This document shows, piece after piece, positions 15,693 through 15,760 of a DNA stretch of 26,665 bases. Each line of letters starts with the position of its first letter. Positions within the stretch are counted from its first letter, which is position 1. Source of the DNA: Macrostomum lignano (lineage: Eukaryota); NCBI GenBank assembly GCA_002269645.1, contig NIVC01002489.1, positions 1-26,665 on the forward strand. Direction: 5' to 3'. The position numbers and the translations under genes were made by a program. The notes below the pieces were generated by a model. That model saw nothing but the letters and a program-made list of their open reading frames with translations, had not been told where the DNA came from and searched no databases.

Positions 15693-15760
15693 AGCCTTTC
15701 TAGGAAAGGCCTGCAAAAACTAGAGAATTCTCCTAAGAGTATCCCTCCACGGAAATCTTT
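15693..15760 (-). ncRNA. U5: Element-borne variant U5 3' half at the 5' end of copy B (now separated from a U5 5' half by copy C)
   Basis: Identical to 23091..23158: AAAGATTTCCGTGGAGGGATACTCTTAGGAGAATTCTCTAGTTTTTGCAGGCCTTTCCTAGAAAGGCT. Confidence 0.85.

Follow-up and report, generated by a model that had tools for sequence, protein, structure and literature searches.

A 26,665-nt stretch of Macrostomum lignano DNA (contig NIVC01002489.1, assembly GCA_002269645.1; hereafter the window) carries an array of a long interspersed nuclear element (LINE) seated inside a U5 small nuclear RNA (snRNA) gene, and both copies in this array open with a variant version of the U5 3' half that the insertion has displaced kilobases downstream. 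All U5 and LINE features lie on the minus strand, where the order is U5 promoter and 5' half, AAAGATTTCCGTGGAG, copy C, the same 16-mer, copy B, the 16-mer again and finally a different U5 3' half. Four further stretches of M. lignano DNA from three contigs were found via protein look-ups (L004 and L007, both on NIVC01002892.1; L005 on NIVC01003829.1; and L006). Across the window and these stretches, the variant half leads 10/10 full-length copies as well as a 95-nt unit that ends one array, giving 11 units. With the variant half, which is of a paralogous U5 type, at the start of every full-length copy, the promoter-proximal copy leaves a gene that the U5 covariance model accepts end to end. 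Judged from the sequences, this is a real, multi-locus feature and marks a target-specific LINE with an apparently new form of target restoration. The "self-healing" architecture is well supported, and the half being transposon-encoded is the favoured reading of it. After every full-length insertion, a complete U5 reading unit very probably stands at the promoter, a point common to the three mechanism models weighed below. The features that carry the argument are as follows, alpha and beta denoting two types of U5 upstream flank.

23263..23287, minus strand: proximal sequence element (PSE)-like block at -81..-57 of the interrupted U5 gene, a putative promoter block conserved between alpha and beta flanks
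23242-23231, minus strand: TATA-like TTTCTATATAAT of the interrupted U5 gene, conserved between alpha and beta flanks
23159..23206, minus strand: host U5 5' half, 48 nt, with the 5' strands of stems Ia/Ib, the 5' strand of stem Ic and loop I CGCCUUUUACU, placed by the Rfam U5 alignment
23091..23206, minus strand: rebuilt chimeric full-length U5 (host 5' half, 16-mer and copy C head), matched by RF00020
23143..23158, minus strand: 16-mer AAAGATTTCCGTGGAG, copy 1, target-site duplication (TSD)
15761..23142, minus strand: LINE copy C, 7,382 bp, delimited by self-BLAST, open reading frames (ORFs) and frameshifts, with tail ...CGTTTTAACAAC
23142-23091, 23090-23064 and 21774-19984, minus strand: head, U5-flank-like 27 nt and ORF1 of copy C, the 5' untranslated region (UTR) lying before ORF1 and a frameshifted ORF2 after it
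15745..15760, minus strand: 16-mer, copy 2, joining the tail of C to the head of B
9309..15744, minus strand: LINE copy B, 6,436 bp, with 5' UTR, ORF1, ORF2, 3' UTR and tail AACAAC
15693..15744, minus strand: head of copy B, the 52-nt variant U5 3' half on which the finding centres
15666..15692, minus strand: 27 nt TATTAGAAATAGAATAGTTTAGACTAG travelling with the variant half
9293..9308, minus strand: 16-mer, copy 3, joining the tail of B to the displaced half
9240..9292, minus strand: displaced "host-type" U5 3' half, 53 nt
9130..9239, minus strand: fossil stretch downstream of the displaced half

At the 5' end of copy B (15760-15693, minus strand), the 16-nt repeat AAAGATTTCCGTGGAG is followed by the 52-nt variant U5 3' half, GGATACTCTTAGGAGAATTCTCTAGTTTTTGCAGGCCTTTCCTAGAAAGGCT, which is identical in copy B (15744-15693) and copy C (23142-23091). 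This half comprises the rest of the stem Ib strand, the linker UCUUAG, GAGA, AGUUUUUGC and an 8-bp hairpin. The first-pass annotation had described a head shared by B and C that is diverged from the host 3' half beyond the common 16 nt while keeping its length and every structural part, and this description holds. Together with the 16-mer, the halves measure 68 and 69 nt, and past the 16-mer 34 of 54 aligned columns are alike. A stem Ib partner strand (UGGAGGGAUAC versus UGGAGAGGAAC) is present in both, as are GAG for stem Ia and an equally placed U tract, and either ends in a hairpin of 8 bp with a 3-nt loop. The compensatory swaps reported for this hairpin are likewise present as two double changes (C-G to G-C and C-G to U-A), to which one single compatible change (A-U to G-U) can be added. 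Within the window, the 16-mer occurs three times against 0.36 expected with 3 mismatches permitted (0/100 shuffles), and loop I CGCCUUUUACU is found once, as an exact match. Self-BLAST aligns 9289-15431 with 15742-21883 and 15420-15760 with 22818-23158, in both cases at 99.4% identity.

The annotation had further proposed that insertion rebuilds a full-length U5 at 23091..23205. The rebuilding was supported by Rfam, and the span proved one base short: over 23206-23091, the U5 model (RF00020) is matched from position 1 to 117, end to end, with 83.2 bits and an E of 3.7e-13 at a gathering score of 40. The rebuilt genes of L004 and L005 score 83.8 and 83.5 bits, respectively. Isolated U5 halves were not detected by Rfam at E<=10 in 9000-16000, and the combination of the 5' half with the host-type half was judged by explicit pair counts and energies, not by Infernal score.

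The linkage of the variant half to the element, also claimed at the outset, is supported by its position in all 11 units, behind two promoter types. The 3' end of the LINE always meets U5 at ACU/AAAG (the slash marking the junction), between loop I and the 3' strand of stem Ic, and 12 identical junctions of the tail with AAAGATTTCC were counted in the window and on the three added contigs. As the last A's of the tail overlap the AAAG of the target, the nick cannot be placed to the exact base. At the other end, the junction GACTAG/CCTAGC between flank and LINE is the same in all 10 full-length copies. The U5 upstream flanks are of the alpha (window, L004) or beta (L005, L006) type; they differ by large indels and have only the PSE-like and TATA-like blocks in common. 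The bodies of the elements differ by 0.14-1.3%, and the occupation of two unlike promoter types by near-identical elements indicates that different U5 genes were hit recently. An array of at least four copies stands behind a single U5 5' half in L004/L007. Its most distal copy is the most diverged (7.9-9.1 per 1000 versus 1.6-3.9 among the others of the array). Three promoter-proximal copies have one 5'-UTR variant set in common. Both patterns fit repeated entry into the rebuilt gene on its promoter side, which gives rise to head-to-tail arrays.

The extent of the target duplication is illuminated by a 600-bp, headless, 5'-truncated copy located between a U5 5' half and a full copy in L006 (9128-9708). 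Its upstream junction reads ...ACT AAAGATTTCCGTGG / TGATTTCCG / AAGTGACC, and the 16-mer lies downstream. Since this headless copy is still preceded by AAAGATTTCCGTGG, no fewer than 14 of the 16 nt stem from duplication of the target, and the earlier verdict that the 16 nt could be either a TSD or element-borne no longer stands for this portion. The U5 gene behind the truncated copy is no longer complete, with a partial Rfam match of 43.8 bits. The 27 nt that accompany the variant half are probably the 3' flank of a U5 gene. Behind the variant half that ends the L007 array, this flank has the GAAGTTG haplotype, and non-element DNA starts after it. All five units of L004/L007 have GAAGTTG, whereas the window has GAAATAG and L006 has G(A/G)AATAG. 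A rare flank variant, G73, is present in two copies of one 5'-UTR type that are seated in different U5 genes. Variation is dense in the linker and in an 8-nt stretch of the flank (+5 to +11; GAAATAG/GAAGTTG), several-fold above that in the LINE 5' UTR, for which gene conversion involving native U5 copies is a candidate explanation.

The element itself is a young, U5-snRNA-gene-specific, apurinic/apyrimidinic endonuclease (APE)-type retrotransposon without long terminal repeats (non-LTR), about 6.45 kb long. Its reverse transcriptase (RT) was recognised as RVT_1 (PF00078, E 1.1e-36) at residues 328-580 of ORF 9866-12133(-), and ORF1 begins with an AlkB-type dioxygenase domain, 2OG-FeII_Oxy_2 (PF13532, E 1.7e-16), and has CCHC knuckles. 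The N-terminus of ORF2 in the intact L004 copy weakly matches the endonucleases of TRAS1 and an L1 (E 0.004) and has the motifs GDLNARH...SDHLPI; the PDB matches are too weak to assign an endonuclease clade. Relatives of the RT carry the APE domains PF14529/PF03372, and for one of them, P0002, PDB matches to L1 ORF2p and the R2 RT were obtained. The LINE has neither LTRs nor terminal inverted repeats (TIRs), self-BLAST showing head-to-tail copies only, and it ends in CGTTTTAAC(AAC)n, a short AAC repeat instead of poly(A). The length of this tail varies between AACAAC, AACAACAAC, AACAACAAA and TTTTTAAC (window 9309-9314 and 15761-15766; L005 5645-5660; L006 9700-9708; L007 16037-16045). Intact reading frames exist in the family, with a 944-codon ORF2 in element 1 of L004 and a 688-aa ORF1 in element 2 of L005, and ORF1 is 100% identical over about half its length to the annotated M. 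lignano protein PAA54533.1. The coding parts of the window copies are located as follows.

15473 onwards, minus strand: ORF1 of copy B from its ATG, frameshifted, with the AlkB domain at ~14987-14399 and CCHC knuckles at ~13523-12771
~12717-9866, minus strand: ORF2 of copy B, frameshifted, with APE followed by RT at 11152-10394
~21438-20850, minus strand: AlkB domain of copy C ORF1

The closest RT relatives, on other contigs, have 60% and 56% identity; beyond them, identity falls to about 30%, with proteins named jockey or X-element. On the contigs of the closest relatives outside M. lignano (L001-L003, 47-60% RT identity), which lack 5' ends, no U5 fragment was found even at 3 mismatches. Metagenome scans gave no match for the tail followed by the 16-mer and, for the 16-mer followed by the head, four chance bacterial matches, none with U5. 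The AlkB domain is retained in the relative with 56% RT identity, which comes from another sample (L002 1-300), and when LINE relatives with 5' ends were sought through this domain, the only matches were stand-alone AlkB proteins of bacterial type (31-50% identity). AlkB domains have been described in orchid Ty3/Gypsy elements (PMC9289625), and no report of one in a LINE was found in the literature. Rfam detected no HDV-like (hepatitis delta virus-like) or other ribozyme at the 5' end of the LINE. The 5' UTR contains a pyrimidine tract followed by CAG, TTTTTATCTCTACCCCACCCCTAGTCTTATCTTGCAG (15610-15574 in B and 23008-22972 in C, minus strand), which looks like a 3' splice site or a spliced-leader (SL) acceptor, and the diverged leader of copy A, at the start of the window, has a similar pyrimidine tract ending in TAG.

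The displaced host-type half had been taken as the plain native 3' half of the gene, and its surroundings contradict this. Beyond it lie 26 nt (9239-9214), a decayed element tail with a 33-nt deletion (9213-9183), a decayed 16-mer ATTTCCATGGTGAG (9182-9169) and a decayed, older, host-type-like U5 3' half (9168-9130) with a hairpin that has lost its fold. The local alignment of this fossil scores 62 against 22 +/- 4.2 in shuffles, and 0/500 shuffles reach 62. A decayed tail and a decayed half after the "host" half imply that the U5 3' half of this locus had already been replaced once earlier. The half brought in by that previous replacement is structurally perfect, whereas the one that it displaced has decayed, and in our reading nothing else hints as strongly that a re-headed gene may function. 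The arrays have a complex history in other respects as well. Window and L005 match at 99.7% identity along 15 kb downstream, and their U5 promoters and first elements differ; the alpha flank of the window and that of L004 (alpha') are homologous upstream and unrelated downstream. This discord among flanks requires one recombination or misassembly under any model. Copy B is a mosaic: the final 1.4 kb at its 3' end contain every one of its roughly 17 private variants and represent a separate sub-lineage.

The mechanism that we favour, with moderate confidence, combines a 16-bp TSD with a mobile unit to which the variant half and the 27 nt belong. A single capture from a U5 paralogue would have brought in the U5 half, with the RT switching template to a U5 transcript extended at its 3' end or with transcription reading through out of a U5 gene. 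Its inheritance would follow from an RNA template that begins further upstream, the U5 promoter being the simplest starting point. In such a co-transcript, homology for the exact 5' junction would come from the U5 5' half and the 16-mer. In support of this mechanism, the array shared by the window and L005 ends in a different, host-type half. This host-type half pairs 31/31 with both alpha and beta 5' halves (position 3 being G.U or A.U), and the variant half 29/31 with both. The uniform GACTAG/CCTAGC junction, the presence of G73 in different U5 genes and the mere 14 nt of target before the truncated L006 copy point the same way.

Several points weigh against a captured half that still serves a working gene. 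In the canonical U5 structure, the chimera forms 29/31 pairs, with U.U in stem Ib and G.A in stem Ia, at -19.7 kcal/mol, compared to 31/31 pairs and -27.7 kcal/mol for the U5 5' half joined to the host-type half. The variant Sm-like site, AGUUUUUGC, is off-consensus, departing from the model AAUUUUUGg at one position, the second. The flank haplotypes follow the array and not the lineage, and B and C each have several frameshifts, which may be errors of long-read assembly. Furthermore, either the arrays recombine or their repeats are misassembled, so the sole junction at which the head differs from the displaced half could be secondary. An snRNA promoter with a working 3' box would oppose read-through into a 6-kb LINE; when the two flanks were compared by eye for such a box, the outcome was at most suggestive. 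Finally, a 95-bp target duplication accounts for several of the facts at least as well.

Such a long duplication is the main competitor of the captured half, although we consider it the less probable of the two and on balance unlikely. The LINE proper would then start at CCTAGCTTAGC, and the head would be duplicated target DNA, leaving the upstream gene native and intact. With the bottom strand nicked at ACU/AAAG and the top strand 95 bp downstream, 26-27 nt beyond the U5 3' end, the U5 3' half and its flank would be duplicated. The predicted distal duplicate matches the end of the L004/L007 array, where tail, 16-mer, variant half and 27 nt are followed by unrelated AT-rich DNA and satellite. 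The fossil also has the form expected of a truncated insertion, with 16-mer, host half and 26 nt before the tail fragment and a decayed 16-mer and half after it, and the lengths agree (16+52+27 = 16+53+26 = 95). Flank haplotypes are uniform per array, yet the body of C is nearer to an L007 copy than to B. The mismatch between variant and host-type halves in the window would be explained by a crossover between arrays in two kinds of U5 gene, and the private variants of copy B are the signature that such a crossover needs. A precedent is found in the rotifer element R9, with a 126-bp TSD in 28S ribosomal DNA (rDNA). Against this account, the truncated L006 copy is preceded by only 14 nt of target, which would call for an 81-bp deletion, and the 26 nt before the old tail show no relationship to the sequence that follows the decayed half (score 11 versus 14.3 in shuffles). 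In the window fossil, the halves differ at 8/36 positions, compared to 4/44 for the 16-mer and tail. Moreover, all four U5 genes would natively pair only 29/31, while a half found elsewhere fits their 5' halves 31/31; G73 is common to units in alpha' and beta genes; and a host-type unit upstream of a copy was seen in 0/11 cases. A head remade at each insertion is improbable. Here, the LINE RNA would start at CCTAGC, the RT would jump to a 3'-extended U5 precursor and the U5 complementary DNA would anneal to the 5' half of the target, so that the head would be a retro-copy of host U5 RNA. LINE RTs are well known to switch onto snRNAs (PMC4494074), the fossil resembles the product of a jump that left the LINE within its 3' UTR and landed on a host-type U5 transcript with a 26-nt extension, and head and flank vary more densely than the LINE 5' UTR (8/33 unconstrained positions versus ~8/190). 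However, 10/10 flank-LINE junctions are identical without added bases, 11/11 head units are of one U5 type and G73 moves with one LINE 5'-UTR type. Least probable is that the half did not transpose at all and that a single ancestral U5 gene with a LINE behind it was multiplied through tandem duplication, unequal crossing-over and gene conversion. Arrays do recombine, but the internal junctions lack any U5 5' half, all tails meet U5 at one base, the truncated copy has its own duplication, intact ORFs exist and 99%-identical elements sit in U5 genes with quite different promoters. Plain local duplication was rejected on these grounds. A 68-bp TSD comprising the U5 half only was rejected because the flanking halves differ in 20/54 columns in copies that are 99.4% alike. 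For an integrase-type, gene-restoring element, the enzymatic domains found do not fit, these being AlkB, APE and RT only.

Whether the rebuilt gene still works is a separate question, which arises under each of these mechanisms. On sequence grounds, the chances are about evenly balanced that it yields usable U5, which would let the LINE inhabit a small, essential gene family; the arrangement would also put the LINE behind a strong RNA polymerase II (Pol II) snRNA promoter. The first-pass annotation had gone further and seen selection maintaining the head. The sequences do not show this: copies that are only 0.14-1.3% apart say little about selection through the conservation of their heads, and the compensatory changes in the hairpin predate the capture, showing only that both halves descend from working U5 genes. 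The head may instead be an inert passenger, attached to a gene that is nonworking or dispensable given enough intact U5 genes and persisting as part of the copied unit, a reading to which we give a little less than an even chance. The youth of the family removes the need for selection to explain identical heads, the chimera has its U.U, its G.A and its Sm site AGUUUUUGC, and the 52 nt, with 4 variable columns, are not less variable than the 5' UTR. On the other hand, these four substitutions among 11 units are all singletons in the 6-nt unpaired linker UCUUAG (U5 positions 71-76), outside stems, Sm site and hairpin (4/4; P ~0.014 taking ~18 unpaired non-Sm positions as the free class), which may be a hint of function. 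The intact earlier replacement beside its decayed predecessor also argues against a passenger, as does the size of the target family: U5 is usually encoded by a small gene family, so destroying copies should be costly. A function for the element would not exclude either outcome and seems doubtful at present. A complete U5 fold with an Sm site at the start of a transcript from the U5 promoter could give this RNA stability, a trimethylguanosine (TMG) cap and Sm-dependent nuclear import, with the pyrimidine tract and CAG acting as an SL acceptor that releases a translatable mRNA. All full-length copies keep their heads, in L004 it is the promoter-adjacent copy that has an intact ORF2, the 5' UTR contains TTTTTATCTCTACCCCACCCCTAGTCTTATCTTGCAG, with a TAG-ending counterpart in the leader of copy A, and M. 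lignano uses SL trans-splicing. Nevertheless, this role is pure inference, and snRNA-type units normally terminate early. The broadest version of the proposal, which we put forward only tentatively, is that an M. lignano retrotransposon provides working U5 genes with their 3' domain and exchanges it time and again, that serial re-heading would drive the evolution of this domain, leaving decayed earlier halves downstream, and that the element would use the U5 promoter and perhaps Sm site/TMG-cap import.

The remaining features of the window lie outside this argument.

1..2010, minus strand: LINE copy A, which runs off the window start
21879..22817, minus strand: nested TIR element of 939 bp, TAGGGATTCCAA...TTGGAATCCCTA (12-bp TIRs), with the 8-bp TSD CTCTTGAG, inside the start of ORF1 of copy C

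Copy A has no U5 head and lacks 620 bp of the ORF1 5' region, and its leader is only ~75% like that of B. It is joined to satellite DNA, not to a U5 5' half, and its 3' end lies beyond the window; it may be an off-target copy, a rearranged copy or a member of another subfamily. The 939-bp TIR element is missing from B and every other copy and is unconnected to the U5 genes. Satellites with units of 16, 19, ~30 and 15 nt surround the U5 loci (window 23696-24600, 25167-26300, 3400-5500, 2060-2910 and 7500-9130; L007 17160-21134), and the motif AGAGATTTAGTATATTTAGA is repeated at either side of the window array.

The survival of site-specific LINEs is commonly put down to targets with so many gene copies that losing one is cheap, and the usually small U5 families do not fall into this class. 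If the reading given here is true, an element that regenerates the gene it enters, via a spare half or a long duplication of fitting extent, would represent a novel route by which a eukaryotic retroelement avoids doing harm and a natural design for inserting into a gene without losing it. Mobile DNA could then renew or swap a domain of an essential spliceosomal RNA, and part of the U5 of the spliceosome would be transposon-borne. With its transgenesis and RNA-seq resources, M. lignano offers a concrete and testable system.

Among known systems, the closest in biochemistry are R1 and R2 (28S rDNA), Mutsu (5S), Keno and Utopia (U2 snRNA) and a U5 family of the Tx1 clade. They share with the M. 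lignano LINE an RT and endonuclease and target-primed insertion at an exact base of a small or ribosomal RNA gene, together with TSDs, 5'-truncated copies, tandem arrays and likely co-transcription with the target. In the texts consulted, these elements are described as interrupting the gene that they enter (e.g. Mutsu), with no mention of a substitute for the displaced portion. The targets of Mutsu and of Dada transposons are not restored. The elements SLACS/CRE/CZAR and NeSL-1 reside in SL RNA genes and are thus similar in inserting within a Pol II small-RNA gene and using its promoter; however, they have a restriction-like endonuclease, destroy the gene copy and are not known to carry a replacement part. 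The Tx1 family is listed by name only, with the target "U5 snRNA", in the legend of Fig. 3 of Kojima 2015 (PMC4494074), a paper that also describes how RTs switch template to snRNAs and how elements are transcribed together with their targets. The M. lignano LINE differs from it in that its nearest named relatives are jockey/X-like (~30%) and its ORF1 has an AlkB domain. No published description of a LINE that restores its target or brings a replacement half was found in the literature. Fusions of snRNAs to the 5' end of LINE-mobilised units are known from LINE-mediated chimeras (U6-L1 etc.) and from SINEU, short interspersed elements with U1/U2-derived heads, template switching being the accepted route (PMC4494074; PMC4476161). 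These are dispersed pseudogenes or element heads, whereas in M. lignano the snRNA part is correctly aligned behind a promoter and 5' half, so that a gene is completed.

If the long duplication is correct, the M. lignano LINE would share with R9 a distant second-strand nick that duplicates ~100 bp of an RNA gene, with the difference that its duplication would cover exactly the remainder of the gene and its 3' flank and thereby regenerate the gene. The nearest functional parallel is found in prokaryotic prophages and integrative elements at tRNA and transfer-messenger RNA (tmRNA) genes, the phage attachment site (attP) of which carries the 3' end of the gene. They likewise supply a new 3' part beside the retained 5' part and promoter, leaving the old 3' part at the far end. 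These elements are bacterial or archaeal and use a tyrosine integrase in conservative site-specific recombination, whereas the M. lignano LINE has no integrase and uses reverse transcription; it would represent, if it regenerates its target gene by either route, an RNA-mediated counterpart of tRNA-gene prophages.

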